In this document: positions 5,152-26,068 of the stretch, piece after piece
Layout of the letters: every line of letters begins with the position of its first letter
Position numbering within the stretch: the first letter of the stretch is position 1
Assembly (NCBI GenBank): GCA_002269645.1
Contig: NIVC01004236.1
Coordinates: 1-29,899, forward strand
Direction of reading: 5' to 3'
Length of the DNA: 29,899 nt
DNA from: Macrostomum lignano
Lineage: Eukaryota
Made by a program: the position numbers and the translations under genes
The notes under the pieces: model-generated
The model's database searches: none
Told to the model about the DNA's origin: nothing
What the model saw: only the letters and a program-made list of their open reading frames with translations

Positions 5152-7690
5152 AAAGTCAGTCAACGCCTTCCAAGTTTTTGATTATAAGGAAGGCGAAAAA
5201 GACCCGCATACAGTAGTCATTGAGGGTGACCCCGGAACAGGGAAGAGTACGCTGGCTAAGTATATGGCCTACAAATGGTCTTTGGACGAAAACGTATTCG
5301 GACGGCCTTTCCAACTGCTAATCTTGCTTGATCTTAAAGTGACAGCGCCCACAGTGAAAGTGATGATGATGGAACAGCTTTTCGGAGGCGACTGCAAGCT
5401 GGCCGAACGCGAAATTTGGGAGGTGATGAACATGCACCAGGCGAGCACACTGCTCATCATAGATGGCTACGAAGACAATCTAAATGATGAGATGAAGAGT
5501 TTGCTATTTGAGAACATCATGCCGGAACTGCACATTCTGGTATTTAGTCAGACTAACTTTACAGTCAGACTGATGCACCGCTACCAGCGAAAGGTAATTC
5601 TGACCGGATTCGCCAAATCCCAGGCAGAGGAGTACGTTCAGAAGTACGTCAAACTAGCTAAGAAGCCGTGGGAACACTTTTCCTCGTTTCTAAACAAGCT
5701 AGTAGTGGCAAAAAAATCAACTGAGCTTCAAAAGCTGCTGGATGCAGCGAAAAAGTCGCAGGAGCCGCAGAGGCGACGCGGGTCGTCAGAATCGGCGACA
5801 TCTGTGACCTCGGCAAAGCCCAGAGACGAGCGACCTTTGGAGAGGGAAAACACGGACAAAGTCAGCACAAAACTAAGCCGCAGCTCTAGCAAGGGTCAAG
5901 GAAACGATCAGCAGCAACAACAGGATTCAAACGGTGAAAATTCAAATCAAAGCAAAATAGCGTCCCTGCGACATTACTCACAGGTGCCTTTGTACTGTTC
6001 GTTCTTCTGCCTGCTGACCGACATGCGCATGAGTATCGATCTGAACTCTCCGACAACAATTGTGGAACAGTTTGTCTCCTGCATCAAGTTGAAGCTGATC
6101 GAACGCGAAAAGGAGAGTCGCTTCGAAGCGAATCGCGCCTACGCAATGCTGTCCGAACGCGCTATGGACACCATAAAGAAAGGCAGCGCAACTTTCATTT
6201 TGGCCAAGGAGGACCACATGATGACTAAGTTCGGCCTGATTCAACTGGCTACAAACCTCACCGCAGAGGATAACCAGCGCTACATGTTTGGCAATCGTCT
6301 TATTCAAGAGTATCTCGCCGCGAAAAATCTAGACACTAGTGGAACAGATGAAGCTAGCCGCTTCTTCCAGAACATGAGTATGACTCCGATCTCCTACAAT
6401 GTTGTTGTGTTCTACTGCAGCATCCGCAAGTCGGACAACGACACGCCGGCCACCCGGGAACTGTTTGCAAAGATACTGCAGTATAACAAACGGCGAGGCA
6501 AAGCGAGTCGCATGAAAATGCCAGCGGCTACGTCGCCAGAAGACAGTCAACTGGTCGAGGGCAAGATCATGGACTACCAGCTCAGTCTGGAATGCGTGGC
6601 GGTCATGGACATGGCCCGCAGAGATCTTGGCAAGAAAATTGTTGAATCGCTGCCAGAGCGATTCACCGTGAAGCACGAGGGCATCATTCCGAGATTGTCG
6701 CTTACAGGCCTGTCCAAGATGATCAAGTTTAACCACACGACCATCCAAGAGGTGGACTTGCGCCTAGATCTGCTAGCCAAAGAGACGCTTGAGGCATACA
6801 AAAGTCTGGCTACCGCAATGAAAACGAACGTTCACATCAAGACGCTCCGCATCTACTGGACAGAGAAGGATCTAATGGCAGACTTCCTTCAAACCGTGTG
6901 CTGTCCGGAGCCAGAGGACCCCGCCAATTCTACAGGCCAGATGGAAATCAGGCGTAAGAAGCCCGATCAGACCGGCTTTCATCTGAAGAATCTTGAGTGC
7001 ATCGACGAGTCAGGAAAGAAGCTGGACCAGTTGTCGCCAAAAATGCTAAACAACATGCGCGAAGCCTGCTCGAACATGACTAAACTAGAAACGTTCGCAT
7101 TTCAAAATTGTCACCACATGTCGCTGGTTGGAAGCATAATAAAAAATTTGCCAACTAAATTTGCGGACAACCTGCGCATTCTAGACTTTTCTGGCTGCCA
7201 GATGAGCATAGTGGCATCGCAGGATCTCAACGGAAAGCTGATGGAGAGCAAGAGTCTAGAAGGCCTGATCTTGGCTAACCTCAAGATTGATGCGATGGCC
7301 TTTAACACTTTCATCGCCGCATTCTCTAGCAATCGGACCATTGTCCTGCTGGATTTGAGCGGAATCCGCCTGGACAATGTCTGCTTCTTCTCTCTATCCG
7401 AAGCGCTGAAAATTAATAACAAGCTTGAGAAGCTATTCTTACGCCAGGTGCCAATGGACACGAGAGCTTGCAAAGAGGTGGCTAGAATTCTAAAGATTAA
7501 TAAGATGCTGAAACTTCTCACGGTCACGCAGGAGGTCGTCAGCGAGGAGGGTCGCCGGGTTCTGGGCGAGGAGAGCCAGACGGAGACGCGCAAGAATCGG
7601 GCGGTCGTGGACGGCATCGGGGTGGAGTATCGGCAGAGACCGACGAACGAGAGGGCCAATACTAAGAGAAACCCGCTGTCAGTCAAGTGA
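5152..7690 (+). CDS. NLR-like gene exon 3: NACHT NTPase, winged helix and LRR region; full spliced protein 1271 aa
   Basis: Walker A VVIEGDPGTGKSTLAKYMAYKW (5225-5251), Walker B LLIIDGYED, ILTGF, P-motif YSQVPLYCSFFC, WHD FGNRLIQEYLAA, LRRs LRILDFSGCQM / LEGLILANLKI / IVLLDLSGIRL / LEKLFLRQVPM. Exon lengths 1135+142+2539=3816 nt, uninterrupted. Confidence 0.93.
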
Positions 7691-9149
7691 GGAAACCATG
7701 GCCGATGATGAAGACGCATCCTAACTATTATTATCAAATAACAGTGAATTTCAATAACTTTTTAAAAGTTGTGAATAGTTTTTGTTTAGCACTGCCCTCC
7801 TTCGTTAATACGGCCCACAAGAACTTTGTAACTGTTTGCACAGAACGAGAAATCCTAGAATTTAAGCGATATCTTACTGAGACAAAGATGATTTTTTCTA
7901 AAGTAAAAACTGTACGTAAAACATACAGTATTGTTTTAAGTTTATTTATTCTCTATAATAACATTAAGCTAAATGATACAATATAATTTTCAATTTTTTA
8001 ACAGACAGCTTTGTAACAGACTAACAGGAAAAGTTCTTGTCAATTTTTCTAGAAAAAATATAAACAAGTGAATAATAGTTTTTACACTTGGTTGGTTTTA
8101 AATGAAAATTTAAGACAGTGGGTACTTTAAACAAGATGATGATGAAGCGGCCCCAGTCGCTAAACACAGAATCCCAGCTCCAGTTCCATATAAGACCGAT
8201 CGTCCTTCTCTCTTGCCGTAGAGGGAGAAGATTAATTTGCCTGTCGATAAGAAGCCGAGCGACGAAGTTTGGGGTTGCTATGGGGGAGGGGGGTTAATGA
8301 ATCGAATGGAGGCAAAGTGTCAGACAGTAGTGAGATAGATAGGACCCATTCAATCGCGGCATCGATAGCGCTCACACTTATACTATAAGAACTATATAGA
8401 TTCTATATTCGAAAGTCTTGAGCGCATTGGCAGTTTGATTAAAATGCCCATAGCTATAGAGGTTGAAGCCACCAAACTCGCGCTGTCCCATCTTATCGTT
8501 GGGAGGGGGAGCCATAAATGGGAAAGAAAGAGAGAGAGAGACCAACAGGAGCTAGATCGGATAGAGAGAGAGCGAGTGAGCAATTATAAGAAACTGGGGA
8601 ATGTGAAGTTCCGAATGAGAATAAGGCGGAAATGAATAGGCCAGAGGCAAATGGTGAGGGGTGATATATAGGGATTCTGAGCAGTATAGACTCAAATAGA
8701 ATAGGAATGATAGAGATAGAAGAAAGTAAAATGCGGAGGCACCAAATTCCAGAGCTTCGACCGGTTCGAAGAGTTGATTGGTTGCAAAGAGGCACTGATT
8801 TATATACGAGCGTGTATATAATAATACATAGAAGGGAGAAGACTGCAGGGGCTTGGGATTGAATTTTGTTCGGTTTGCTTTTCAATGGGAGATAATGACA
8901 GTGCATAAGAATGAGGAGGTGGTTGGGAGAGGGCAAGGAGACTCAGAACTTGGACTGACAACTCTTATTCAAGCCTTACATTTTTGGACAACTATAAAAC
9001 TTGATTGTAGCTTAGTGTCTTTTAACTTCTCTTTTATTACTAGGTCGCATTTATATTGCTCAGAATGCAGTTAATTGTGTTTAAGGAACTAGCAATCTGC
9101 GCTCCTTCTGTTGGTGACGCAACAAAGAAAGGAATAACAGTTTTGAGTA

Positions 9150-9445
9150 AACTATATGTAAGTAACTACATGTAAGTTTTTTATGTGCAACCGACAGCTC
9201 AGCCGCAGCTATTTCGCGGCGCATTTGAAGGTTGCGTACGGCTGTTCAGTCCAAGGACTGGGGGTCGCCACACACACAGCCTCAATTACCCCAGCTAATG
9301 CTGGCACCATTTTACAGCTGGGTGAACTGAAGCAATGCAGAGTTAAGTGTCTTGTTTAAGGACAAATTGTTTCAGTGGGATCGGAAATCGAACCCCTGAC
9401 CTTCAAATTGTGAGTCCGACGCTCTAACCACTAGGCTACAACAGC
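9150..9445 (-). mobile_element. tRNA-derived CORE-type SINE, copy 2 (most complete)
   Basis: A box TAGCCTAGTGG (~9438-9428), B box GGTTCGATTTCC (~9394-9383), CORE-like body, short ACTTACAT/GTAGTT repeat tail near 9150-9180. Confidence 0.87.
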
Positions 9446-9769
9446 CGTAGTACAGTCAAGTCAGTATTGCTAATCTCTTCAGGAAAATGATGTTTAAAGG
9501 AAAGCAGCATCAGTCTTGAGAAACAGCTATCTAGCTGAAGATATGAGATTCCCTATGAGTTTTTTTGGCTCAAAACATCTGAGTAACCACCAAGAGCCAC
9601 AGAATTTCAGCAATTCCCCCCAATGAGCCTTGACATCTCAGCATTTCCCACACGAACCTTGGCATGTCCCAATTACCACACTGTCATTTTAAAATGTTTT
9701 CTCTGTGTTTTTGGCATGATTTTCTACACACTTTAGTTCCTTATCTGAACCTTTCTGAATTTAGGGCCA

Positions 9770-9945
9770 CACTTTAGGGCAATGAGAATCACACTTTAGG
9801 GCAATGGGAATACACCAATCACAGAATTTCAAGTGAGAATCACACTTTATAATCACACTTTAGGGCAATGAGAATCACACTTTAGGGCAATGAGAATCAC
9901 ACTTTAGGGCAATGAGAATCATACTTTAGGGCAATGAGAATTACT
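9770..9945. repeat. Short array of 22-bp ATCACACTTTAGGGCAATGAGA, reverse complement of the 14905-18077 satellite
   Basis: About 6 copies, partly interrupted. Confidence 0.92.
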
Positions 9946-10332
9946 TTATACTTAAAAGTTCAAACAAAATGACTCGAAACAGTCAGAAACTCGCAGACTG
10001 GGATAGAGGAAGGTTCTTGTTTTTTGCGTTTTTATTTGTTTACTCAATCCTAGCACGCCAAGTTCTAGCTGTGGGCCTCCTTGACACGAGGAGAAAGGGG
10101 AAGAAAAGGAAAAAAGGAAGGACGAGGTGCGTCAGTCGAAGGTACACACAGTCGAGCACGGGCGAATAAAATCGAAAGCTGGTGTGATAGGCCTTGAGAC
10201 GCAGCCAACAAATGGCCTTTAATATTTTAGCATTGCGGCAGGAAAATCCGCTGTAATCTGACACCGGCAATACAGTTTACAAACGAGAGCTGGCCAGCCC
10301 ACTAAACCAGCTGTCGGATTTCCTCCGCAAAG

Positions 10333-10716
10333 ATGAGCGACAATGAGGAACGAATCTGCCTCGTACCAAAAGACGACGACGAATGGAAGCAGCAAAAGCC
10401 GACGGTGACACAAGGAGACACGATCGATGCTACCATAGTAGAGGAGGCTTCAACTTCTTCATCGACGGCTGCAGTCACTACGGCACTGTCAGCAACAGCA
10501 TCGGCACCATCGGCAGCCTCAAACAGCAGCAGCAGCAACAACAAGCGAAGGAGAAAGCTAAGAAGAGCCGGTACAGTTATTGGTGGAAGCAAGAGATTTT
10601 CGAGCCATGGTGGCGGCGGGAGCGGCAGCGGCGGAGTGGCTGGAGGCAGACGGGTGCTGGCTAAGAAGGCCAGTCTGGTTGCTATCGCATCGTCCAAGAG
10701 GCACACAAGTAAAAAA
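10333..10716 (+). CDS. Atypical G-alpha gene, predicted exon 1 (128-aa low-complexity/basic N-terminal extension)
   Basis: ORF from ATG 10333 ends at strong donor AAA/GTGAGT (10717) in phase 0, matching the phase-0 acceptor at 11867. The linkage is inferred from phase only. Confidence 0.6.
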
Positions 10717-10754
10717 GTGAGTAGATCGGAGGCCACAAGATGTTGCATCAAGCA

Positions 10755-11020
10755 GAGGGGGGGGGGTTGTAGCCTACTGGTTAGGGGATTCGATTCTTGA
10801 CCCACCCAGAACAACTTGTGTCCTTGAGAAAGACACCTCAACTCTGCATTGCTTCAGTTCACCCAGCAGTAAAATGGGTGACAGCATTACCTGGGGTAAT
10901 TGAGGGCTTGTGTGGCGATGGCAACCCCAGATTTTAGACTCAACAGCCGCAAGCAGCCTTCAGATGCGCCACGCAATAGCCAGTTGTACGAGCTACATCT
11001 GCCTATTAAGGCAGGTGTAG
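10755..11020 (+). mobile_element. tRNA-derived CORE-type SINE, copy 3 (more diverged)
   Basis: TTGTGTCCTTGAGAAAGACAC..CAGTTCACCCAGCAGTAAAATGGGTG..TGGGGTAATTGAGG..CAGCCTTCAGATGCGCC matches the reverse complement of copies 1 and 2. Confidence 0.8.
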
Positions 11021-11866
11021 TAAAAAAGCTGTCAGTGAAGATGCTATGATAGTGGAGATGAGATCTCACTGGAGATCAGATATTAGTAGATAACATGAGA
11101 AAGAAATAGAGTTAAGGTGAAGGTAAAGATTATACTTCCGTGAATATAAGAGCTCAGTGGAGATTCAATATCAATAAAGACGAGATTTCATTAGGGATGA
11201 AGGTTGAGATGTCAGTAGGGATAAGTTCTCAATGTCATTTCATCACTGGTAGGTAGCTGTAGCCGACTGTAACTATAAATAATGATCAAATATGAATACA
11301 AGTCAATAAGATTGCAATCAAACAATTCTTTTTCAAAACTATCAATTGCTCGGCCGTATTAATTCCCCTATAGAACATTGGGGCGCCCAATTATGCTGAA
11401 GAAGAGATAAAGAAATTGACTATGAAAAAAAGGATGGGAAACGCGCATATTTTTATTTGCATATAACAACGCTTGTCCCCTAATTGCGATTGAAATTCAA
11501 TTATCCAGTACTAAATTTTCTATTTTGAGTTATGGCACGCATTATAGCTATATTGGATTAGAAGATAAGCAAATATATATTGGAATAAATTCGGCAAGGG
11601 GTGCTTAGGAAAATGAGTAGTGGTTGGGAGTACCAACTAGTTTTCTCCTCTATTCTCCGATTCCAACAATCTATAGTGCGAAATGCCAAATTCAGTGTGT
11701 TAAGGAAATGATGACGGCTCGAGTTACGAGCCAATTTCTGGAGAGGATTTAAAAAGCGCCAAACAGTCCTTCTGCCGTCTCACTCACAGATACCTGGGTA
11801 CACGCAAGAGACACCCGCTGAGGACTTAGAGATCTCTTATTCAACTCGCATCAAAACTTCTTACAG

Positions 11867-11996
11867 ATATCGGATCATTTTAACAGCATCAACAAGCTGG
11901 CTCAGAAGAGGGCTCTGATGCGTTCGAAGCAAATTGACCAGCTGTTGCTGACTGACCAGGAAGCCAAGCGCAAGGAGATTCACCTGCTGCTGATTG
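11867..11996 (+). CDS. G-alpha exon: alphaN helix and beta1
   Basis: ISDHFNSINKLAQKRALMRSKQIDQLLLTDQEAKRKEIHLLLIG resembles the canonical RSKxIDxxL..(K/R)ExKLLLLG. TTACAG acceptor, G/GTTTGT donor. Confidence 0.85.
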
Positions 11997-12082
11997 GTTT
12001 GTTTTTTTACTTTAGTACAACACGACACACGTTAAAACAGTTTCTTTCTTACCAAATAATTCCAAATATCTCGACGTCTTAA

Positions 12083-12710
12083 ATGTGTCTACCACAGCCT
12101 GAAGTGTGTCTACCACAGCCTGAAGTGTGTCTACCACAGCCTGAAGTGTGTCTACCACAGCCTGAAGTGTGTCTACCACAGCCTGAAGTGTGTCTACCAC
12201 AGCCTGAAGTGTGTCTACCACAGCCTGAAGTGTGTCTACTACCATATCCTGAAGTGTGTCTACCACAGCCTGAAGTGTGTCTACCACAGCCTGAAGTGTG
12301 TCTACCACAGCCTGAAGTGTGTCTACCACAGCCTGAAGTGTGTCTACCACAGCCTGAAGTGTGTCTACCACAGCCTGAAGTGTGTCTACCACAGCCTGAA
12401 GTGTGTCTACCATATCCTGAAGTGTGTCTACCACAGCCTGAAGTGTGTCTACCACAGCCTGAAGTGTGTCTACCACAGCCTGAAGTGTGTCTACCATATC
12501 CTGAAGTGTGTCTACCATATCCTGAAGTGTGCCTACCATATCCTGAAGTGTCTACCACAGCCTGAAGTGTGTCTACCACAGCCTGAAGTGTGTCTACCAC
12601 AGCCTGAAGTGTGTCTACCATATCCTGAAGTGTGTCTACCATATCCTGAAGTGTGCCTGCCTGAAGTGTGAAGTGTGTCTACCACAGCCTAAGTGTGTCA
12701 AGTGTGTCTA
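12083..12710. repeat. 21-bp minisatellite GTGTGTCTACCACAGCCTGAA in G-alpha intron
   Basis: About 28 copies; source of the PQPEVCL and LQAVVDT artefact ORFs. Confidence 0.97.
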
Positions 12711-13026
12711 AAAGTGTTACTCAGTCTAAAGTGCCCTTTTGAGAGTTCGGAACGTGTCTCACGGCATCTGTAGTGCGTCTCTCGACAGGCTAAAATGTGT
12801 ATACAGTCTATAAGTGTGTCTATCAATAAAAGAGTGTCTCACTATTAAGTTTAAGTTTATGCTGAAGTTTAATTTAAGTTTAATTTTATGAAATTAAAAC
12901 GACAGTATTCATTCATATTATCCGTTATATAGCGCTATTCCTTTAGATTTTTTAACTGCCAAGTTTTTTTCAACCAAAACGTATATTAACGTTTAATCCA
13001 GATTTCACTTTTTGACATTAACTTAG

Positions 13027-13211
13027 GCGGCAACGGATGCGGCAAGAGTACGTTAGTGAAACAGTTTCGAATTCACTACGGAGACGCATTCCCGGACGAG
13101 CAACGCAAGGCGCTGATCGGTCAGGTGCTGGAGAATCTAGCAGATGCGGTGCACATTGTGCTGGAGAATATGCGCACTAGGGACATCTGGTTTCACGATC
13201 CCTACATCAAG
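13027..13211 (+). CDS. G-alpha exon: P-loop and helix alphaA
   Basis: GGNGCGKSTLVKQFRIHYGDAFPDEQRKALIGQVLENLADAVHIVLENM resembles GAGESGKSTFIKQMRIIH..F...E....V.QN...AM..M. Phase-1 acceptor, AAG/GTAGGA donor. Confidence 0.92.
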
Positions 13212-13565
13212 GTAGGAAGGTAGCGGTTTTTTATTCTACATCAAAGTTTGATTGCAGCTGTTGTTGGTCAAAGGGACTTTTTCGAAATTCTAGAAATTAT
13301 CTATCAGAGGACTTGGGCCAGAAGGCTTTCGCTCGATTCCAGGCGTAGCTACATCAAATTTGAATCCACATATTGGGATATTTTTGCTCGACCCATGGCA
13401 GACAAAGTCGGGGCTGCAGTGCATCTTTAGTGCGCCCCTCATGTCTCTGTACTTGTGTAGCTTTGGCTTTAGGGAACCGCAAAAATTCAAGGGCTCACTT
13501 TCTCAGTGCCAGGGTTTTGGAGTTGGTTCTCTTGAACAAGCCCCAGGCAAATATTCATACACCAG

Positions 13566-13975
13566 ACCCGAATTCTGTGGCCCCGCATGGAATGCAACTC
13601 ACACGGAGATGTAAGACCATTGTTAATCGCGCACCCAACCAGGACATGGTTGAAGAATTCCAAGCCTACTGTCCGAAATTCAACAGTCAAATATTTCGCC
13701 ACTCCGGCAAACAAGTGGACATTGAGAACAGCATTCACTACGCGCACGTTGATTTTGTGGACGACGATACGCTGGCATCGGCGCCGACTGACACCGACCT
13801 GCCTAGCAGTTGCGGTCACGACAACGCGCACGAACTACTGTTATTCGATGTTAGCTACCGAGAGGCCAGGCGAAACAACTTAGACTTGAACGGACTTGAC
13901 GGACTGGCTTCGGGTGGGGACGGCAACGGAGGCGACACGGCGTCAGCTTCGTTAATAATCTATTATAATACGCAG
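13566..13975 (+). CDS. G-alpha exon within the helical-domain insertion (5' boundary unresolved: 13507 or 13566; a small exon ~13308-13344 probably precedes it)
   Basis: Open frame ..QDMVEEFQAYCPKFNSQIFRHSGKQVDIENSIHYAHVDFVDDD..YNTQ ending at CAG/GTGAGA in phase 0, matching the acceptor at 14388. Confidence 0.55.
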
Positions 13976-14227
13976 GTGAGAAAGACGCGTCTCACCGGAT
14001 GAGTCTATTTGGAGCATCGTATTAAATAGATAAAGAATAAGAAGTCCACGAGGATTATAAAAAACCAGTTATTTTCTTCTTATCATGTTTTCTTCTACAT
14101 GTAAAATGAAGTCATTATACAAGCGCACATTAAGATCTTAGTACATTTTGGTCCTCATAAATGTGAATTAATGTAACTATAAGGTCATTTCAAGCATGTG
14201 AATGCACATTTTTGTCCTTGTTTAGCG

Positions 14228-14355
14228 CGGCCCGGCGCCTCTAAAGGCTGCGTACGGCTGTTCAGTCCAAGGACTGGCACCCATTTTACAGCTGGGTGAA
14301 CTGCAGCAATGCAGAGTAAAGTGTCTTGCTCAAGGACACAAATTTGAACTCAAGG
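14228..14355 (-). mobile_element. CORE-type SINE, copy 4 (truncated, internally deleted)
   Basis: AAGGCTGCGTACGGCTGTTCAGTCCAAGGACTGG is fused directly to CACCCATTTTACAGCTGGGTGAACTG...GTGTCTTGCTCAAGGACACAA. Confidence 0.85.
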
Positions 14356-14387
14356 TCCTTTCTATCCGATATATAAAAACACCGCAG

Positions 14388-14797
14388 GGCCTCGAGGACA
14401 GCCAGTCCGAAGCGGACGACCGAGACCGTGAGCGAGAGACGCACACGGCCAGGACCTACATTAGCAGTCTGGAATTTGGCAAATTCTCCAGACGTCAAAG
14501 ACGCCAACAACTGCAAAACCTGAGCGGAGAGGATGCCGGACTGAACCAGCTGGACGATGGCAGCTCCGACAGCAGCTGCGCCAGGCTGGTTGAGCACCTT
14601 CACCTAGGCGACGCGCACGACACCGACTCCTCGGGAGGTCGGCGCGCCTCGTCAACCCTGGACGGCTTGCCGCCTCACGACGAAATCGTGTTCTGCTTCG
14701 TGCGACACATAAAGAACTGCATTGTGCAGCCGGAGTTCGAATTGTGCCTCGCTGATCACGAGTACTTCAAGCCGGAGATTACCTACGCCGAGATGTA
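14388..14797 (+). CDS. G-alpha exon: end of insertion, helices alphaC-alphaE (not in ORF track)
   Basis: GLEDSQSEADD...PPHDEIVFCFVRHIKNCIVQPEFELCLADHEYFKPEITYAEM. Ends TA/GTGAGT, completing Tyr with the C at 18196; 410 nt = 136 codons + 2. Confidence 0.75.
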
Positions 14798-14904
14798 GTG
14801 AGTTACTTCGTTTGTTTTTAGAGGGTCTGACAGACAGTCTAGCTGTCCTCTTGATTGTTAATCTGTTTTTTTATATTCAATAGTGACTAGTTCAGTAGGG
14901 CAGC

Positions 14905-17900
14905 GATTCTCATTGCCCTAAAGTGTGATTCTCATTGCCCTAAAGTGTGATTCTCATTGCCCTAAAGTGTGATTCTCATTGCCCTAAAGTGTGATTCTCA
15001 TTGCCCTAAAGTGTGATTCTCATTGCCATAAAGTGTGATTCTCATTGCCCTAAAGTGTGATTCTCATTGTCATAAAGTGTGATTCTCATTGCCCTAAAGT
15101 GTGATTCTCATTGCCCTAAAGTGTGATTCTCATTGTCATAAAGTGTGATTCTCATTGCCCTAAAGTGTGATTCTCATTGTCATAAAGTGTGATTCTCATT
15201 GCCCTAAAGTGTGATTCTCATTGCCCTAAAGGGTGATTCTCATTGCCCTAAAGTGTGATTCTCATTGCCCTAAAGTGTGATTCTCATTGCCCTAAAGTGT
15301 GATTCTCATTGCCCTAAAGTGTGATTCTCATTGCCATAAAGTGTGATTCTCATTGCCCTAAAGTGTGATTCTCATTGCCCTAAAGTGTGATTCTCATTGC
15401 CATAAAGTGTGATTCTCATTGCCCTAAAGTGTGATTCTCATTGCCCTAAAGTGTGATTCTCATTGCCCTAAAGTGTGATTCTCATTGTCATAAAGTGTGA
15501 TTCTCATTGCCCTAAAGTGTGATTCTCATTGCCCTAAAGTGTGATTCTCATTGCCATAAAGTGTGATTCTCATTGCCATAAAGTGTGATTCTCATTGCCC
15601 TAAAGTGTGATTCTCATTGCCCTAAAGTGTGATTCTCATTGCCCTAAAGTGTGATTCTCATTGCCCTAAAGTGTCATTCTCATTGCCCTAAAGTGTGATT
15701 CTCATTGCCCTAAAGTGTGATTCTCATTGCCCTAAAGTGTGATTCTCATTGCCCTAAAGTGTGATTCTCATTGCCCTAAAGTGTGATTCTCATTGCCCTA
15801 AAGTGTGATTCTCATTGCCCTAAAGTGTCATTCTCATTGCCCTAAAGTGTCATTCTCATTGCCCTAAAGTGTCATTCTCATTGCCCTAAAGTGTGATTCT
15901 CATTGCCCTAAAGTGTGATTCTCATTGCCCTAAAGTGTGATTCTCATTGCCCTAAAGTGTCATTCTCATTGCCCTAAAGTGTCATTCTCATTGCCCTAAA
16001 GTGTGATTCTCATTGCCCTAAAGTGTGATTCTCATTGCCATAAAGTGTGATTCTCATTGCCCTAAAGTGTGATTCTCATTGCCCTAAAGTGTGATTCTCA
16101 TTGCCCTAAAGTGTCATTCTCATTGCCCTAAAGTGTCATTCTCATTGCCCTAAAGTGTGATTCTCATTGCCCTAAAGTGTGATTCTCATTGCCCTAAAGT
16201 GTCATTCTCATTGCCCTAAAGTGTCATTCTCATTGCCCTAAAGTGTCATTCTCATTGCCCTAAAGTGTCATTCTCATTGCCCTGAAGTGTGATTCTCATT
16301 GCCCTAAAGTGTGATTCTCATTGCCATAAAGTGTGATTCTCATTGCCCTAAAGTGTGATTCTCATTGCCCTAAAGTGTCATTCTCATTGCCCTAAAGTGT
16401 GATTCTCATTGCCCTAAAGTGTGATTCTCATTGCCCTAAAGTGTGATTCTCATTGCCCTAAAGTGTGATTCTCATTGCCATAAAGTGTGATTCTCATTGC
16501 CCTAAAGTGTGATTCTCATTGCCCTAAAGTGTGATTCTCATTGCCCTAAAGTGTGATTCTCATTGCCCTAAAGTGTGATTATCATTGCCCTAAAGGGTGA
16601 TTCTCATTGCCCTAAAGTGTGATTCTCATTGTCATAAAGTGTGATTCTCATTGCCCTAAAGTGTGATTCTCATTGTCATAAAGTGTGATTCTCATTGCCC
16701 TAAAGTGTGATTCTCATTGCCCTAAAGGGTGATTCTCATTGCCCTAAAGTGTCATTCTCATTGCCCTAAAGTGTCATTCTCATTGCCCTAAAGTGTGATT
16801 CTCATTGCCCTAAAGTGTCATTCTCATTGCCCTAAAGTGTGATTCTCATTGCCCTAAAGTGTCATTCTCATTGCCCTAAAGTGTCATTCTCATTGCCCTA
16901 AAGTGTGATTCTCATTGCCCTAAAGTGTGATTCTCATTGCCATAAAGTGTGATTCTCATTGCCCTAAAGTGTGATTCTCATTGCCCTAAAGTGTGATTCT
17001 CATTGCCCTAAAGTGTCATTCTCATTGCCCTAAAGTGTCATTCTCATTGCCCTAAAGTGTCATTCTCATTGCCCTAAAGTGTGATTCTCATTGCCCTAAA
17101 GTGTCATTCTCATTGCCCTAAAGTGTGATTCTCATTGCCCTAAAGTGTCATTCTCATTGCCCTAAAGTGTCATTCTCATTGCCCTGAAGTGTGATTCTCA
17201 TTGCCCTAAAGTGTGATTCTCATTGCCCTAAAGTGTGATTCTCATTGCCATAAAGTGTGATTCTCATTGCCCTAAAGTGTGATTCTCATTGCCATAAAGT
17301 GTGATTCTCATTGCCCTAAAGTGTGATTCTCATTGCCCTAAAGTGTGATTCTCATTGTCATAAAGTGTGATTCTCATTGCCATAAAGTGTGATTCTCATT
17401 GCCCTAAAGTGTGATTCTCATTGCCCTAAAGTGTGATTCTCATTGCCCTAAAGTGTGATTCTCATTGCCCTAAAGTGTGATTATCATTGCCCTAAAGGGT
17501 GATTCTCATTGCCCTAAAGTGTGATTCTCATTGTCATAAAGTGTGATTCTCATTGCCCTAAAGTGTGATTCTCATTGCCCTAAAGGGTGATTCTCATTGC
17601 CCTAAAGTGTGATTCTCATTGTCATAAAGTGTGATTCTCATTGCCCTAAAGTGTGATTCTCATTGCCCTAAAGGGTGATTCTCATTGCCATAAAATGTAA
17701 TTCTCATTGTCATAAAGTGTGATTCTCATTGCCCTAAAGTGTGATTCTCATTGCCCTAAAGTGTGATTCTCATTGTCATAAAGTGTGATTCTCATTGCCC
17801 TAAAGTGTGATTCTCATTGTCATAAAGTGTGATTCTCATTGCCCTAAAGTGTGATTCTCATTGCCCTAAAGGGTGATTCTCATTGCCCTAAAGTGTGATT

Positions 17901-18077
17901 CTCATTGTCATAAAGTGTGATTCTCATTGCCCTAAAGTGTGATTCTCATTGCCCTAAAGGGTGATTCTCATTGCCATAAAATGTAATTCTCATTGTCATA
18001 AAGTGTGATTCTCATTGCCCTAAAGTGTGATTCTCATTGCCCTAAAGTGTGATTCTCATTGCCCTAAAGGGTGATTC
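14905..18077. repeat. 22-bp satellite GATTCTCATTGCCCTAAAGTGT, ~144 copies (3.2 kb) in G-alpha intron
   Basis: Direct reading; highly homogeneous with a few diagnostic variants. Confidence 0.99.
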
Positions 18078-18195
18078 AACATCAGTCTGATTACAGTTTT
18101 CAAGTTAGCGACAATTTTAACTTAAAACACTAAAAACTTACTAAAATGTTTAAGGCTCTGTAAAATAAAGATCACCAATCTAAATAAATCTACAG

Positions 18196-18324
18196 CTTTA
18201 TACAACACGTGGATCGCGTCATTCAAGAGGACTATGTGCCAACGCTGCAAGATATTTTGGCCATTCGCAAGCCGAGCGACGCAGTCAGACAGACCGAATT
18301 TCAAATTGCTGGCACCACTTTTCG
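18196..18324 (+). CDS. G-alpha exon: alphaE-alphaF, switch I
   Basis: YFIQHVDRVIQEDYVPTLQDILAIRKPSDAVRQTEFQIAGTTFR resembles [41 protein letters not shown] donor. Confidence 0.92.
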
Positions 18325-18349
18325 GTGAGCTTAAAGCGGATGCAGAATG

Positions 18350-19130
18350 TTCTGTGTCTACTTTCCTGTCGCTTCTGTGTCCACCTCTTTGTACTCGCTT
18401 TGTCCACCTCCCTGTCGCTGTAGTGTCCATTTACTGGTCGCTGCTGTGTCCACCTCGTTGCATCCGCTGTGTCCACCTTCCTGTCACTGTTGTGTCCACC
18501 TCTTTGCATCCGCTGTGTCCACCTCTCTGTCGCTGTTATGTCCATCTTCCTGTCGCTGTTATGTCCATCTTCCTGTCACTGTTGTGTCCATCTTCCTGTC
18601 ACTGTTGTGTCCATCTTCCTGTCGCTGTGTGTGTCCACCTTTCTGTCGCTGTTATGTCAATCTTCCTGTCGCTGTTATGTCCATCTTCCTGTCACTGTTG
18701 TGTCCATCTTCCTGTCACTGTTGTGTCCATCTTCCTGTCACTGTTGTGTCCATCTTCCTGTCGCTGTGTGTGTCCACCTTTCTGTCGCTGTTATGTCAAT
18801 CTTCCTGTCGCTGTTATGTCCATCTTCCTGTCACTGTTGTGTCCATCTTCCTGTCACTGTTGTGTCCATCTTCCTGTCACTGTTGTGTCCATCTTCCTGT
18901 CACTGTTGTGTTCATCTTCCTGTCGCTGTGTGTTTCTACCTCTCTGTCGCTGTTATGTCCATCTTCCTGTCGCTGTGTGTGTCCAGCTCTCTGTCGCTGT
19001 GTGTGTCCAGCTCTCTGTCGCTGTGTGTGTCCAGCTCTCTGTCGCTGTGTGTGTCCAGCTCTCTGTCGCTGTTGTGTCCATTTCCCGGTCGCTGTTGAGT
19101 CCACCTTTTTGCATCCGCTGTGTCCACCTC
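18350..19130. repeat. CT-rich ~23-bp degenerate minisatellite (CCTGTCACTGTTGTGTCCATCTT-like)
   Basis: Many variant copies; source of Cys/Leu-rich artefact ORFs. Confidence 0.93.
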
Positions 19131-19216
19131 CCAGCCTCCAATGTGTCTGTTTCCCTAAATTCCCTAAATTCAACTCCCTAAAATGTTTTGTGTCCACCTC
19201 CTTGAATCTGAATCAT

Positions 19217-19478
19217 CTGTGTACACCCCTGTCTATCTGTGTACACCCCTGTCTATCTGTGTACACCCCCTATCTGTGTACACCCCCTATCTGTGTACAC
19301 CCCTGTCTATCTGTGTACACCCCCTGTCTATCTGTGTACATCCCTGTCTATCTGTGTACACCCCCTGTCTATCTGTGTACACCCCCTGTCTATCTGTGTA
19401 CACCCCTGTCTATCTGTGTACACCTCCTGTCTATCTGTGTACACCCCTATCTGTGCGCACCCCCTGTCTATCTGTGTC
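19217..19478. repeat. ~20-21-bp repeat TATCTGTGTACACCCCCTGTC
   Basis: About 13 copies, each with a GTGTACAC palindrome. Confidence 0.93.
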
Positions 19479-19576
19479 CGACCTCCTTGGCTTTTTCATC
19501 ACATCTGGATATCATCAGCCAAGTCAATCAATTTATCTGCAATAAAAATCCGCCCAATTTTCATTCAAAACGACAG

Positions 19577-19706
19577 CATGATCGATCTGGCAGGCCAGAG
19601 AAGCCAGCGGCACAAGTGGATTCACTATTTCGAAGACGTCAACGCAGTGCTATTCGTCAGCTCTCTGTCTGGCTTCGGCGAGCTTGTCGAAGAGGAGGAC
19701 AGAACG
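19577..19706 (+). CDS. G-alpha exon: switch II
   Basis: RMIDLAGQRSQRHKWIHYFEDVNAVLFVSSLSGFGELVEEEDRT resembles [34 protein letters not shown]. Confidence 0.95.
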
Positions 19707-19789
19707 GTGAGAAACCACGCACGTCTTTCTAAATCATTAATCATCATAAATCATGTCATAAACAGACAATCCATCCGTACATTCTCCAG

Positions 19790-19945
19790 ACAATTAAAAT
19801 GTCCGACTGTCTATCAACATTCAGCGAGATCATCAGCAACAAGTACTGTGGAAGAAGGATTTCTTTCTGTTCTTAAACAAATTGGACGTGTTCGAGCAGA
19901 AGTTGAAGTCCAAGAGTATTACAGGACTGTTTCCGGACTATCGAG
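19790..19945 (+). CDS. G-alpha exon: alpha3 and NKxD motif (one -1 shift near 19847-19851)
   Basis: KMSDCLSTFSEIISNKY, then after the shift WKKDFFLFLNKLDVFEQKLKSKSITGLFPDYRG, resembling NRM.ESL.LF.SI.NN.WF....ILFLNKKDLFEEK.......FPEYxG. Confidence 0.88.
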
Positions 19946-19961
19946 GTGAGATTTTTCAGAG

Positions 19962-20480
19962 AAATCGCCCCTGGTTATCCAAGCAAATCACCCTGATTAT
20001 CCATCAAAATCGCCCTGATTATCCATCAAAATCGCCCTGATTATCCATCAAAATCGCCCTGATTATCCAAGCAAATCGCCTTGATTAACCAGGAAAATCG
20101 ACCTGATTATCCATCAAAATCGCCCCGATTATCCATCAAAATCGCCCTCATTATCCATCAAAATCGCCCTGATTATCCATCAAAATCGCCCTCATTATCC
20201 ATCAAAATCGCCCTGATTATCCATCAAAATCGCCCTGATTATCCAAGAAAATCGCCCTAATTATCAAGAAAATCGCCCTGGCTATCGAAGAAAATCGCCC
20301 TGATTATCCAAGAAAATCGCCCTGATTTTCCAACGAAATCTCCCACATTATCCAACGAAATCGCCATTTTTTTCTTGAAAATCGCTCCGATTATCCAAGA
20401 AAATTACCCTGATTATTCAAGAAAATCACCCTGATTATCCAAGAAAATTGCCCTGATTATCTGAAAAAATCGCCCCTAAT
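19962..20480. repeat. 22-bp minisatellite AAATCGCCCTGATTATCCATCA and variants
   Basis: About 22 copies filling the last G-alpha intron. Confidence 0.93.
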
Positions 20481-20549
20481 ATAGATAACAACGAACAAAC
20501 AGAATCGAGACATCAAGTTTGATCCTCCTCAATCGTCCTCAATCTCCAG

Positions 20550-20749
20550 GCCACGACGAGGTGAACCAGTGCGCGCAGTACATCAAGGAGAAGTTCACCA
20601 GCCTCATACCGAAGAACATGCCAAAGTCCAAGAGAATCTACACGCACCTCATCACGGCCATAGACATTGACAGCATGAAGCCCCTGTTCAAAGAAGTGCT
20701 GCATCGAATCGCTGAGGCGAACTTGAAGAAGAGCATCACGATTTTTTAG
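20550..20749 (+). CDS. G-alpha terminal exon (alpha4, beta6, alpha5)
   Basis: GHDEVNQCAQYIKEKFTSL..KRIYTHLITAIDIDSMKPLFKEVLHRIAEANLKKSITIF* resembles ..YI..KF..L..K.IY.HFTCATDT.N++.VF..V.D.I...NLK. Confidence 0.93.
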
Positions 20750-20900
20750 TCTAGCTTGCAAATTCTATGAACTAAACAGTCAAATTACTAACTTATGTAC
20801 TTTTGTCACCAAAGGGATCAAACAGGCTTATTATACGCAACAGTACCTTGCACCTTGCAAATCAAATTGTTGCGACTTTGTATAAATGTAACTAAACACT

Positions 20901-20906
20901 AATAAA
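20901..20906 (+). terminator. Candidate polyadenylation signal for the G-alpha gene
   Basis: AATAAA about 150 nt after the TAG. Confidence 0.45.
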
Positions 20907-20917
20907 TACATAGATAC

Positions 20918-21810
20918 TGACACAAACAAACAATCGATTGACACAAACCATTACTCTTAATAACACAAATCATTACTCTACTGACACAAATCAATACTTT
21001 ACTGACATAAATCATTACTTTACTGACACAAATCATTACTTTACTGACACAAATCATTACTTTACTGACATAAATCATTACTTTACTGACATAAATCATT
21101 ACTTTACTGACAAAAATCAATACTTTACTGACAAAAATCATTACTTTACTGACACAAATCATTACTTTACTGACACAAATCAATACTTTACTGACATAAA
21201 TCATTACTTTACTGACAAAAATCAATACTTTACTGACACAAATCATTACTTTACTGACACAAATCAATACTTTACTGACATAAATCATTACTTTACTGAC
21301 ACAAATCATTACTTTACTGACACAAATCAATACTTTACTGACATAAATCATTACTTTACTGACAAAAATCATTACTTTACTGACACAAATCATTACTTTA
21401 CTGACACAAATCAATACTTTACTGACATAAATCATTACTTTACTGACACAAATCATTACTTTACTGACACAAATCATTACTTTACTGACACAAATCATTA
21501 CTTTACTAACACAAATCATAAACCTACTGACACAAATCATTAATTTACTGACACAAATCATTACTTTACTGACACAAATCATTACTTTACTAACACAAAT
21601 CATAAACCTACTGACACAAATCATTAATTTACTGACACAATTCATAAACCTACTGACACAAATCATTAATTTACTGACACAATTCATAAACCTACTGACA
21701 CAAACCATTACTCTACTGACACAAATCATTACTCTACTGACACAAATCATTACTTTACTGACATAAATCATTAATGTACTGACACAAGTTATTAATCTAC
21801 TGACACAAAT
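20918..21810. repeat. 21-bp AT-rich minisatellite ACACAAATCATTACTTTACTG
   Basis: About 40 copies; source of the VSKVMIC and TDTNHYF artefact ORFs. Confidence 0.97.
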
Positions 21811-21893
21811 TTTAAATCTGCTCGCACAATATAAGAAGAGGTCAATCCCACATAAGCAAGACAACAACAGTATCCACTAGTTAAAGCACTCAC

Positions 21894-22337
21894 CGGTGTC
21901 CCAAAACGAACTCTCTATCATAGCGATACCTCAGCTGGTGCAGCAGGTGTTCCGGGCTGAAATATTTCACCCCAAAATCTTCATCGGGGGCAGCTGCGCC
22001 TCTGGCCGACATTCGCCATACCAGCAACCGGTAATGATTGCGAAGCCAAGCCTCTGTGAGAGCCGGGGCTCGAATCCCAGGCTGAGAGCGCAACTTCGTG
22101 AGCAGCTCCGACCAACCCGTGCCGTCAGAGAAACGAAAATCGCCGGCCAATTCGAAGTCCATGGTCGGCTGGAGACCGGCGGAGTCGGGAATCGGGGAGG
22201 CAGACAGGCTGACTCGCTCGCCCGATGCGGCAAGGCGGAGTCTGGCCAGGCTGAGTTCGCCCAGGCCCTTCTCCGTGGCCTGCTGAGGGGGCGCAAAAAC
22301 ATGATTGAACTGCATTCACCTTTGACGGACGTCTGCG
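21894..22337 (-). CDS. BRCA2: BRCA2 exon: helical domain (5' end contains a TGA at 22318-22316 or a compensating indel pair)
   Basis: GELSLARL..ERVSL..SQPGIRAPALTEAWLRNHYRLLVWRMSA..YFSPEHLLHQLRYRYDREF resembles human [58 protein letters not shown]. Donor CG/GTGAGT at 21893. Confidence 0.93.
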
Positions 22338-22339: not shown

Positions 22340-22632
22340 GGATCTGGGAGGCTGGTGGGCCATCATCTGAGGATCTGGGAGGCTGGCCCAGCAACTGGAG
22401 GGATCTGAGAATGGAGGCCCAGCAACTGGAGGGATCTGAGAATGGAGGCCCAGCAACTGGAGGGATCTGAGAATGGAGGCCCAGCAACTGGGGATCTGAG
22501 AATGGGGGCCTAGCAACTGGGGATCTGAGAATGGGGGCCTAGCAACTGGGGATCTGAGAATGGGGGCCCAGCAACTGGGGACCTGAGAATGGAGGCCCAG
22601 CAATTGGGGATCTGAGAATGGAGGCCCAGCAA
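22340..22632. repeat. ~30-bp minisatellite GGATCTGAGAATGG(A/G)GGCCCAGCAACTG(G) in BRCA2 intron
   Basis: About 10 copies; variant of the GGATCTG...CAGCAACT family. Confidence 0.93.
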
Positions 22633-22664
22633 CACAGAATCTGTAACCCGCAGTTCACACAAAC

Positions 22665-24084
22665 CGCAGCAGCAGTCGAGCAGTCGGAGTCTGCGGCTGC
22701 AACTGTCGCCGAGGAGCAGCGGCAGGCGAGGGCGCGGGCTTGAACCGGTAGAACGCACCCTTAGTAGCCGGAGTCGCCGAAGACGCCGAAGCAGCCCCAC
22801 CTACTGGCGTGTTCAGCCGAGGCGTCCGATGCTGCACCAGCATGGGGTGGTCCGTGGCCTCGGCATCTGCTGTCTGGGAGTGGACATGGAATTCGGAGTC
22901 TGCGGACTTGGTTGAGCAGCTTTGGTCGAAGGATTTGCCGGAGCGGAATCCTCATTCTCAGCGGCCGCAGCCAGGGCTTTGGCCCGAGCCATGGCGCTGG
23001 CCGAGACCTGCACAGCCCGACCGCCCGCTGTGGAGAAGCCGCCGCCAGCCCCGCCACTAGAAGTACTTGGAGCTGTGGCAGCCGAGCTGCATCTGGGACT
23101 GTCTTTATCGGCTTCATCAAGCAGTTTCTGCGCTCGCTTTAACGCCGAAGCTGAAACGCCAACCGAACGACCGCCTGCGGTGGAGAAGCCGGCCGGACCC
23201 TGATTGACAGGCCTGTTGTTACTAACGGGTTCCAGTTCCGCGTCCTCGGCTAGCTGCCGCGCCTTACGCAGAGCGGACGTCGATACTTGCAAAGATTTAC
23301 CACCGGCGGTTGAAAACCCGCCCTTCATATCGACGCTTTCTGGCGACAATTTCCTACCAGATTCGGCAAGATTCTCGTTGCTCCGATGGTTGGCCGCCTC
23401 ATCCTCCAATTGTTTGGCTTTTCGCATGGCCTCAGCTGAGAAGCTGACCAATCTGCCTGAGGCTGTACAGAACCCAGCAGGATTTTTCAAAGCACTGTTC
23501 ACACCGCTGGAAGGTTTACCAATGTTACTTCGCAGCCAGCTAGTGTCCTCGTCTTCCTCTTCGAGGTCTTTGTCTCTAAGATCTTTATCCGTTAGGTCTT
23601 TGTCCCTGTCCAGCCTAGCTGCACTTTCAGCCAGCACATTCTGTGTAAAGTTCAAGCTGCAGTCGGCTAGAAGAGCCTCGACGCCTTCTTTCACGTCGCG
23701 AATTTGCGTAGCAGTCAAATCGCCGTAATCCATTTCGCCTACTGAGTTCGAGTCGGTTGCTGCTGGCTTATTTTGTGCTTCGTCTGTCAGCCGGACAGGT
23801 GGAACTGGGTCAGGACAGTTGCTACGCGGCTCTGGTGGGCTGGTGCGCCGCCTGGATGCAATCCGACAGTCCAAAGCCTCGCGAGCTTCCGCGGTGACAA
23901 TGGCGACATCTTGGCGCGTCTCGGCGTCAGTAGGATAAACCAGAGGCACCGACCAGTGGGCCAAGAGTTTCAGAAGGTCTCGATGCGGCCGCAACGATGG
24001 AATGTTGTCCAGATAGAATGGCTGCGGGAGAATGCACTTTGCTACTGTTACTCCAGTTGGCATTTGTACCCCGGCGCCTGAATA
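22665..24084 (-). CDS. BRCA2: BRCA2 large exon with four BRC repeats (apparent -1 shift at G4 22844-22847)
   Basis: Most of track ORF 22813-24225. The true 5' end is at TGCTCAG/TAT (24084) after a 71-nt intron; after the shift the frame continues ..KGAFYRFKPAPSP..ARLLLR to the donor at 22664. Confidence 0.88.
22960..23480 (-). other. BRCA2: Four BRC (RAD51-binding) repeats
   Basis: GFCTASGRLVSFSAEAMRKAKQLEDE; GFSTAGGKSLQVSTSALRKARQLAED; GFSTAGGRSVGVSASALKRAQKLLDE; GFSTAGGRAVQVSASAMARAKALAAA, versus the consensus FxTASGKxVxVSxxSLxKAxxLFxE. Confidence 0.95.
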
Positions 24085-24155
24085 CTGAGCACACAAGCGA
24101 GCCAATACAGTTCTGCAGGCACTCATGCACACGCTCACACAGGGTGTACACGAAC

Positions 24156-24358: not shown

Positions 24359-24388
24359 CTGCGGGATGGAGAGATTTTTATCAACATG

Positions 24389-25885: not shown

Positions 25886-26068
25886 TTAGCGGTCGCCCAG
25901 CAAATGAGGGTCCAGAAGGCTTCAATACTGAACTTGTAAACTACATTGTATGCATTAGAGACGTATTTTGCTAGAGGATTTGTTGATTTCTAGAAGGGTA
26001 AATGTAAAACCCTAAAGATGCTACTAACTTGACAAAGTAGTTCAGTAAGTTCGGTAAATCCCACTCAC

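Follow-up and report, generated by a model that had tools for sequence, protein, structure and literature searches.

The window analysed here comprises positions 1 to 29,899 of contig NIVC01004236.1 of the flatworm Macrostomum lignano. A multi-exon gene for a heterotrimeric G-protein alpha subunit (Gα) lies on its + strand between positions 10333 and 20749, with eight well-supported coding exons (11867-20749), or nine if a candidate first exon, E1, is counted. Few signalling proteins of animals are as strongly conserved as Gα subunits, which are usually divided into five classes. The gene in the window is very probably the Macrostomum orthologue of Gαx, a vertically inherited, flatworm-wide and highly divergent Gα paralogue represented in planarians by Smed-Gαx1. 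The concatenated conserved exons match the Pfam G-alpha family (PF00503) with E = 2.4e-75 and 254 bits, against a cut-off of 48.8 bits, and a PDB sequence search with the exons gave Go, Gi, Gz and Gq as best matches (Go at 2e-49). A tblastn search of the window with human Gαi1 yielded six collinear + strand pieces, from helix alphaN (11906-11998) to the C-terminus (20537-20728); the query was validated against PDB chain 20zg_A (799.5 bits, residues 1-354). Identity to any canonical Gα class is about 29-32%. An earlier note, made from the letters of the window, had proposed a genuine but highly divergent G-alpha gene at this place, and these results bear it out.

Exon structure and the helical-domain insert

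The alphaN exon, E2 (11867-11996; ISDHFNSINKLAQKRALMRSKQIDQLLLTDQEAKRKEIHLLLI-G), follows the acceptor cttcTTACAG| and ends in phase 1 within a Gly codon of the P-loop. It is supported by the Gαi1 match and aligns with planarian MNCNFK-ISSHLNTIN...SREIDQQL. E3 (13027-13211, 185 nt) encodes the P-loop (G1, GGNGCGKST) and helix alphaA, is 41-46% identical to fluke proteins and ends PYIK|GTAGGA in phase 0; unlike its counterparts in Gi and Mytilus Gv, it has no internal intron. After two exons for the helical domain, described below, comes the switch I (G2) exon (18196-18324, 129 nt; FIQHVDRVIQEDYVPTLQDILAIRKPSDAVRQTEFQIAGTTF-R), which is 58% identical to Fasciola and whose homologue in Opisthorchis is likewise 129 nt long. 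The switch II (G3) exon (19577-19706, 130 nt) ends MIDLAGQRSQRHKWIHYFEDVNAVLFVSSLSGFGELVEEEDRT|GTGAGA in phase 0, and the next exon (19790-19945, 156 nt), which carries alpha3, beta5 and G4 (NKLD), has a broken reading frame. The last exon (20550-20749) encodes G5 (ITAIDID), helix alpha5 and the C-terminus ...ANLKKSITIF, with the stop codon TAG at 20749. It aligns with planarian KIYTHVTCCLDIDKMK...SNVKRMTLF, and the junction leading into it, PDYRG|HDEV, is confirmed by a database protein of M. lignano (P0019, see below). About 150 nt past the stop, AATAAA at 20901-20906 matches the pattern of a polyadenylation signal. Inspected by eye and by script, the junctions define canonical GT-AG introns with consistent phases, the sole exception being the frame break in exon 19790-19945. 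With E1, this model gives a protein of 574 residues without the insert exon at 13643-13975 and 685 residues with it; with the insert exon but without E1, the length is about 558 residues.

The five G-box strings and the C-terminus named in the earlier note are present where it had placed them: GGNGCGKS (the split codon G|GC and 13029-13049), IRKPSDAV in switch I (18263-18286), DLAGQ (19584-19598), NKLD (19876-19887), ITAIDID (20651-20671) and LKKSITIF (20723-20746), all on the + strand. Its estimates of about 575 codons, more than 700 residues and nine or so exons also agree with our 574 and 685 residues and nine exons. Two of its structural statements were wrong. The G-boxes cannot all be assembled in phase, as helix alpha3 is in frame 1 and NKLD in frame 0, and in-phase paths are obtained only by deleting alpha3. 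Nor are the exons filled with repeats: the window is rich in minisatellites (units of 17-31 bp), and Tandem Repeats Finder places those of the gene in its introns. The largest array, 144 copies of a 22-bp unit (14905-18077), fills most of the 3.4-kb intron between the helical-domain and switch I exons, and other intronic arrays lie at 12084-12699, 18401-19107, 19215-19477 and 19962-20475. The 22-bp unit recurs in inverted orientation as a four-copy array upstream of E1 (9851-9941); the arms of the two arrays are 99% complementary and flank the 5' half of the gene.

The protein carries some 195 extra residues, mostly acidic and of low complexity, between helix alphaA and the alphaC-alphaE region. 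They are encoded by an insert exon (13643-13975; 111 residues, phase 0/0; DMVEEFQAYCPKFNSQIF ... SLIIYYNTQ|GTGAGA) and by the beginning of the helical-domain exon (14388-14797; 136 residues plus 2 nt), which has an acidic, low-complexity start followed by the conserved IVQPEFELCLADHEYFKPEITYAEM-Y and ends TA|GTGAGT in phase 2. We delimited these exons with a codon-usage log-odds score trained on the confident Gα exons and on exons of the neighbouring NLR-like and BRCA2 genes (see below). Confident exons score 0.23-0.58 bit/codon, BRCA2 exons lower (-0.06 to 0.14), and intronic windows have a mean of -0.24 and a maximum of 0.045. The values of 0.27 for 13643-13975 and 0.28 for 14388-14663 thus identify coding sequence, with a coding-like onset in sliding windows at about 13604-13640 and 14376, respectively. 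The open reading frame (ORF) upstream of 13604 and the stretch 14226-14387 score negative, that is, as non-coding. The ORFs at 13257-13427 (frame 2), 13364-13642 and 14226-14387 were rejected as exons on their codon scores. The start of the insert exon, DMVEEFQAYCP, aligns with planarian TLAKDFHNNCP directly after a common DPY(I/V)(K/Q), which fixes the acceptor at 13643. A search for Pfam domains in this exon found none. The conserved part of the helical-domain exon matches planarian KEFFKPSITYADLYF and fluke EQPEFQ...VTYADSYF, and its phase-2 TA|gt border recurs in Opisthorchis and in Mytilus Gv.

The size of the insert is hypervariable across the family: about 25 additional residues in the planarian protein, about 195 here and about 270-300 in flukes. 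In the window gene it is divided by one extra intron. The rejected ORF 14226-14387 in that intron belongs to a fragment resembling a short interspersed nuclear element (SINE; 14274-14385), an inverted copy of an element at about 10760-10900, just past the donor of E1. The inverted repeat 10841-10884 / 14274-14317 is 93% complementary. The core of the element reads ...GTGTCCTTGAG.AAGACAC...CACCCAGC.GTAAAATGGGT..., and ARAGORN found no tRNA-like head.

Relatives of the protein and its class ancestry

When the last exon served as query in an exhaustive search, a single true relative came up: P0019 (UniRef A0A1I8F8G0), a 93-residue protein of M. lignano that is labelled 'Transposase'. It is a fragment of Gαx, running from alpha3/beta5 to alpha5, and joins ...GLFPDYRG|HDEVNQ... 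exactly at the predicted junction. Apart from a few stretches shifted by indels, it is identical to the window; the differences are almost only frame-shifting indels, suggesting that one assembly, or both, contains errors of this kind. The remaining matches of this search were set aside: P0018, P0020 (TPR-like) and P0022 (Sel1-like) are unrelated repeat proteins, and P0021 (1352 residues), which shows the same repeated matching of query residues 37-62, was likewise treated as spurious. A word-indexed search returned only matches of about 30% identity and missed both P0019 and the proteins of the flukes, so that concluding from it alone that the protein has no relatives would be wrong. A profile built from the window protein and its two first matches retrieved proteins named 'G protein alpha v1' and, in addition, hypothetical proteins of flukes (622-752 residues) that carry the motifs of the family and are 41-58% identical to the conserved exons of the window. 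The latter are D915_002867 of Fasciola hepatica (633 residues), CRM22_002084 of Opisthorchis felineus (622 residues) and CSKR_107116 of Clonorchis sinensis (752 residues). The Clonorchis model appears to contain a retained intron between switch I and alpha3.

The planarian relative, Smed-Gαx1 of Schmidtea mediterranea (dd_Smed_v6_22522_0_1), is reported to cluster with none of the Gα families, to be expressed in some of the peripheral neural cells and to give no RNA interference phenotype (Jenkins & Roberts-Galbraith, Genetics 2023, PMC10078920). Beyond this entry, we found no flatworm extra-large Gα described in the literature. Smed-Gαx1 matches the window protein from alphaN through the last residue. 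The two share ISxHxNxIN, KQFRIH(Y/H)GD, NLADA(V/I)HIV, FKPxITYAxxYFIQ, IQxDYxPTLQDI, RKP(S/T) in switch I, NKYLW(K/R)KDF, IYTH...DIDxMK and N(L/V)K(K/R)...F, and neither has a lipidation start (MG). The window protein also has the signature motifs of Gαx in their wider form: KQxRIH(Y/F/H)GD, NL(A/T)DA(V/I), (V/I)TYA(D/E)xYF, IQxDYxPTLQD, R(K/E)P(S/T), ...LNK(L/S)D and (A/L)D(I/V)DxM(K/R). Smed-Gαx1 differs in being of normal size (about 385 residues as transcribed, with about 25 rather than 195 extra helical residues) and in having GKT in the P-loop and Tyr in place of the catalytic Gln (DLGGY). The fluke orthologues, like the window protein, owe their extra-large size to an insert in the helical domain, located at the same point, and the Opisthorchis gene has the same intron positions. 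Their insert of about 270-300 residues differs in lying within one exon of about 980 nt and cannot be aligned with that of the window, and their N-terminus is short and basic, without an extension. Their nucleotide-binding motifs (P0056, P0058, P0060 and the Opisthorchis gene, L001) are more degenerate, with GKN for GKS/T and DMAEQ or DLGLQ for DxxGQ, so flukes may carry pseudo-GTPases.

Neighbour-joining trees were calculated from 348 trimmed columns with 300 bootstrap replicates. The references were Gs, G13, Gq, Gi1 and Go (human or mammalian), eleven Gv, and fungal and protist Gα. Checked against PDB chains, Gs and Gq were identical, G13 showed no difference beyond about residue 33, the part of the PDB chain before that point being a Gi chimera, and Gi1 and Go were full-length top matches of about 800 bits. 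The window protein, the planarian protein and the flukes form a clade with 100% bootstrap support that lies outside Gi/o, Gq, Gs, G13 and Gv. Within it, planarian and flukes group together at 87%, which is the accepted branching order of flatworms. Over the trimmed columns the window protein is 44% identical to Smed-Gαx1. Of 96 columns without variation among the other three members it keeps 73, and it is the least derived member of the clade; it is also the most canonical, with 39 of 60 pan-Gα invariant columns and 29% mean identity to 16 canonical Gα. By class, identity is 30-32% to Gi/o and Gv, 28% to Gq and 26-27% to Gs and G13. Gv alone is monophyletic at 100% bootstrap and excludes the window protein. 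A grouping of Gαx with Gv received bootstrap values of 0.02-0.04, and groupings with each of Gi/o, Gq, G13 and Gs 0.00-0.01 (0.00 for both Gi/o and Gq).

The intron positions bear on ancestry as well. Six borders agree in place and phase with those of the Gi/Gq/Gv group in a seven-exon, Gq-like layout: the split Gly codon (phase 1), the border past alphaA (phase 0), TA|Y (phase 2), and those before MxDxxGQ (phase 2), alpha3 (phase 0) and the last exon (phase 1). The human GNAQ exons used for comparison measure 185/129/130/154 nt. Such borders are common to preGNAI, preGNAQ and preGNAV, and GNAI has eight exons and GNAQ seven (PMC5896119). The Opisthorchis gene matches the window in the phase-1 Gly-codon border, the border past alphaA, the phase-2 TA|gt border, the 129-nt switch I exon and the undivided alpha3/beta5 exon. 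The window gene lacks intron 2 of Gi, its 185-nt exon being undivided, and both introns of Mytilus Gv (L002), one at SFK|PAV and one after ...RETCMI that splits alpha3/beta5. We conclude that the intron positions argue for descent of Gαx from the Gi/Gq/Gv stock. As an aside, the Mytilus californianus Gv gene carries its last 17 codons a second time at 32856-32906, about 160 nt past the stop; the end of an exon may have been duplicated there.

Is the protein simply a fast-evolving member of one known class, of Gq or Gv type, with no separate lineage? The Gq-like layout speaks for this, with its seven exons, undivided P-loop and alphaA exon and exons of 129 and 130 nt, and so does the Pro of switch I (RKPS), which is found in the validated reference sequences of Gq (RVPTTGI) and G12/13 (RRPTKGI). 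Gv in turn (GNAV1, the 'fifth class') gave the best full-length matches of the first search and shares QRSQRHKW (in a beetle Gv), VL(D/E)NL in alphaA, EDVNAVLFV..LSG and TTA(I/T)DT with the window protein. Other points speak against it. Identity is lower to Gq than to Gi/o and Gv, the tree gives no support for Gq, the C-terminal and effector-contact motifs are not of Gq type, and the window gene has an extra intron and the large insert. Gv membership, suggested by those first matches, was rejected on the tree and on the absence of the Mytilus introns; Gv proteins also have an MG..C lipidation start and canonical G-boxes. Gi/o is disfavoured by the undivided 185-nt exon and by a tail (SITIF) without the Cys at -4, and Gs and G12/13 by the Gi/Gq/Gv borders, G12 having no border in common with the other classes. 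On balance, we regard membership of a known class as less likely than not.

The earlier note had instead seen a candidate new class. In that form, a sixth class of extra-large Gα of about 700 residues, with a 128-residue N-terminal extension and without the normal receptor-coupling features, we think it unlikely. The clade does stand outside Gi/o, Gq, Gs, G13 and Gv by neighbour-joining, and the authors of the planarian paper were likewise unable to classify Smed-Gαx1; E1 opens with ATG and leads in phase to a GTGAGT donor, its codon score exceeds the intron null, and with it and the insert exon the protein reaches 685 residues. Yet the clade is known from flatworms only and has Gi/Gq/Gv intron positions, so that it looks like a fast-evolving offshoot rather than an ancient class, and an unclassified flatworm Gα had already been published. 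The transcript-derived planarian protein and the fluke proteins begin near exon 2, without the extension. The protein is indeed longer than normal, as the note said, but its length comes mainly from the lineage-variable insert in the helical domain; an N-terminal extension is a less likely contributor, E1 being weakly coding and unmatched in orthologues. The supposedly aberrant C-terminus is conserved: ANLKKSITIF matches planarian SNVKRMTLF and resembles the 'NLK...' tail of Gi and Gq. What stands of the note's classification is that the protein belongs to no class by neighbour-joining; what does not is its isolation, as introns point to Gi/Gq/Gv stock and relatives exist in planarian Gαx1 and the annotated but unnamed fluke proteins. 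In the phylogeny that the note had asked for, the protein nests firmly in no known class and has relatives in a clade of 100% bootstrap support.

Several points weigh against the reading of the locus as a flatworm Gαx gene set apart from the known classes. The deep position of Gαx is unstable, neighbour-joining drawing the clade to a long fungal branch (long-branch attraction), and the position outside all classes could be spurious, produced by rapid evolution from an ancestor of Gq, Gi or Gv type. This instability leaves membership of any class unsupported, and it does not thereby prove a sixth class. The Smed-Gαx1 sequence was transcribed from an alignment in a PDF and may contain errors of optical character recognition. 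The window sequence as it stands does not give the uninterrupted reading frame expected of a Gαx gene, and our assignments of exons, start codon and the base lost at 19847 are predictions from sequence.

The frame break, the translation start and the neighbouring genes

Exon 19790-19945 is 156 nt long, and its flanking phases (0 to 1) need a length of 3n+1, that is 157. Helix alpha3 (TIKMSDCLSTFSEIISNKY, 19790-19846), which matches NRMHESMKLFDSICNNKW of Gαi1, is in frame 1, and this frame then meets a stop codon at 19871-19873. The continuation WKKDFFLFLNKLD... (19849-19945), which includes NKLD, is in frame 0, and codon usage agrees with a switch of frame between alpha3 and NKLD. The break thus falls on the 'TG' at 19847-19848. 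At this site P0019 (KY-L-WKKDFF) and planarian Gαx1 (NKY-L-WRKDF) have one residue more than the window, and the flukes (Y/H-M-A/L-R/K-K-D/E) have the same length as the other relatives. An additional residue in three independent relatives indicates that a Leu codon, originally CTG or TTG, is one base short here and survives as 'TG'. Alternative splicing paths were considered and rejected. Internal AG acceptors at 19825 and 19837 are arithmetically in phase, but they remove alpha3, and it is the other frame that carries the homology and the codon usage of this helix. Micro-introns of 7-15 nt fail to bring the exon back into phase.

The missing base is, in our estimate, somewhat better explained as an artefact of assembly or haplotype than as a true lesion. 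The rival explanation, to which we give rather less than an even chance, is that this copy is a recently inactivated pseudogene that makes no functional protein, for instance a redundant duplicate in a hidden-polyploid genome. M. lignano is described as a hidden polyploid (PMC10468722). The deletion of a single nucleotide disrupts the frame between alpha3 and beta5 and leads into the stop, every in-phase alternative loses helix alpha3, and several near-invariant Gα residues are altered. The altered residues, on the other hand, are traits of the family, common to the expressed planarian Gαx1, and the window protein has the shortest branch of its clade. Across some 2 kb of coding sequence the break is the sole lesion: in-frame stops are absent, every splice site is intact, and the lineage-specific insert exons remain open and codon-biased. 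Given the reconstructed Leu codon (CTG/TTG), a homopolymer of two bases (CC or TT) may have contracted by one at the lesion. Homopolymer contraction is a usual error of long-read consensus sequences. Finally, the Leu is intact in P0019 of M. lignano, and the remaining differences between the two assemblies are also indels.

For the start of translation we moderately favour the AUG of a trans-spliced leader joined at 11866, which would give M-ISDHF... and a protein of about 558 residues. In M. lignano about 30% of genes are trans-spliced to a 35-nt leader ending in ATG, and the trans-splice acceptors are enriched for [T/C]TNCAG (PMC8629364). The acceptor of exon 2, TTACAG, fits this motif, and the leader ATG would be in frame with exon 2. 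The first residues of the planarian and fluke proteins lie 6-7 positions before or after the start of exon 2; the transcript-derived planarian protein, MNCNFK-ISSHLNTIN, begins six residues before the equivalent of ISDHFNSIN. The acceptor motif, the in-frame leader ATG and these orthologue starts together are our reasons for preferring the leader.

A start in the upstream exon E1, giving 685 residues, is improbable by comparison. E1 (10333-10716, + strand; 128 residues, ATG ... SSKRHTSKK|GTGAGT, phase 0) is of low complexity and rich in S, T, A and G, with a KRRRKLRR patch, and its membership of the gene is doubtful. Its good ATG context, in-phase consensus donor and slightly coding-like codon usage speak in its favour; its score of 0.08 bit/codon exceeds the intron maximum, but is well below the range of confident exons. 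The score falls past the donor, and the E1 region is poor in stops in several frames. No counterpart of E1 was found in the planarian or fluke orthologues. A short first exon that we have not seen is a further possible source of the start. The MG lipidation start is absent from both the E1 model (MSDNEE...) and the leader model, the latter also lacking an early Cys, and a search upstream for a short lipidated first exon (MG... or MxC...) gave nothing convincing. In the known extra-large Gα, mammalian XLαs and plant XLG, the additional length is an N-terminal extension. The XL exon is treated in PMC5896119. In the window gene, E1 could add its 128 residues in phase, but its coding signal is weak and it has no match in orthologues; the extension is the least supported part of the gene. 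Fungal matches of the yeast Gpa1 type (453-466 residues) also gain their extra length from an insert after helix alphaA; this is an analogy of architecture, the inserts being unrelated in sequence.

The gene has two neighbours. A BRCA2 homologue on the minus strand (1184-1513, 2445-2519, 21908-22138 and 22816-24237) has BRC repeats, the helical domain, the 'RRILERD' exon and the OB1 'TDGWY' exon, with best database identities of 35-49%. Its intron of about 19.4 kb (2520-21907) encloses both + strand genes, which are thus nested genes: Gαx and, upstream of it, an NLR-like gene of immune type (3721-4869 and 5264-7690) with HEPN_DZIP3, CARD and NACHT domains and a C-terminal part that possibly contains repeats. 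The two long ORFs of the NLR-like gene are in different frames, so that the stretch from 4869 to about 5186 should hold an intron or a further indel. In the introns of BRCA2, a family of 28-31-bp minisatellites (GGGATCTGGGAG...CCCAGCAACTG) at 607-1041, 22385-22633, 24382-25887 and 27801-28625 gives rise to spurious ORFs of great length, which occur on both strands and in several frames.

G-boxes and predicted function

The predicted protein would consist of a Ras-like GTPase domain and a helical domain with a large insert. All G1-G5 motifs are present, with the catalytic Arg of switch I and the catalytic Gln of switch II, but with non-canonical substitutions. In switch I (IRKPSDAV), the Arg is kept and Ser replaces the Mg-binding Thr, and Asn occupies the position of Ras G12 and Gαi1 G42. 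Since GxxxxGKS, the switch I Arg, Ser for the Mg-binding Thr, DxxGQ, NKxD and TA(I)D are kept, the protein should bind guanine nucleotide. Three features, the Asn at G42, the altered switch I (RKPSDAV) and the lack of conservation of the Gln and the P-loop Ser in orthologues, argue that GTP hydrolysis may be slow or dispensable and that control by regulators of G-protein signalling may have been lost. Together with the loss of the Gln in the planarian orthologue, and of the P-loop Ser and the DxxG Gly in the flukes, they suggest that selection does not maintain fast hydrolysis in the Gαx lineage. These readings of binding and hydrolysis are drawn from residue identities. The conserved alpha5 tail, for its part, suggests a conserved partner, be it a receptor or another protein.

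The earlier note had also called for an AlphaFold model, and the AlphaFold2 model of the Fasciola orthologue supports its proposal of a Gα. The mean predicted local distance difference test (pLDDT) score is 67.7; the core, Ras-like and helical, is modelled with confidence, and the insert (residues 124-384) lies mostly below 50, with some predicted helices. Searched with Foldseek, this model finds Gi, G11 and Gq at the top, with template modelling (TM) scores of 0.69-0.76, the Gα chains coming mostly from heterotrimer or receptor complexes.

A more far-reaching interpretation, which we offer as a speculation with rather poor odds, is that Gαx is an ancient, flatworm-wide sixth Gα lineage in which hydrolysis has become dispensable and the helical domain serves as a platform for a hypervariable insert of 25-300 residues. 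Its members would be nucleotide-locked or nucleotide-independent scaffolds and, being absent from hosts, parasite-selective targets, with the Macrostomum gene as the least derived and still GTPase-competent member.

The comparison made here joins four previously unconnected records, planarian Gαx1, the unnamed fluke proteins, the 'Transposase' fragment and the present locus, as one vertically inherited flatworm lineage. For annotation, the locus illustrates that minisatellite-filled introns and single-base indels can conceal a real gene. For flatworm biology, it provides a tractable Gαx orthologue in a transgenic model, M. lignano, and for the liver flukes it flags a G-protein relative that is absent from the host and that, if the speculation above is true, would be a parasite-selective target. 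For the evolution of Gα, the lineage appears to tolerate very large, fast-changing inserts in the helical domain together with a stepwise loss of catalytic residues, and would be a clear case of relaxed GTPase constraint.

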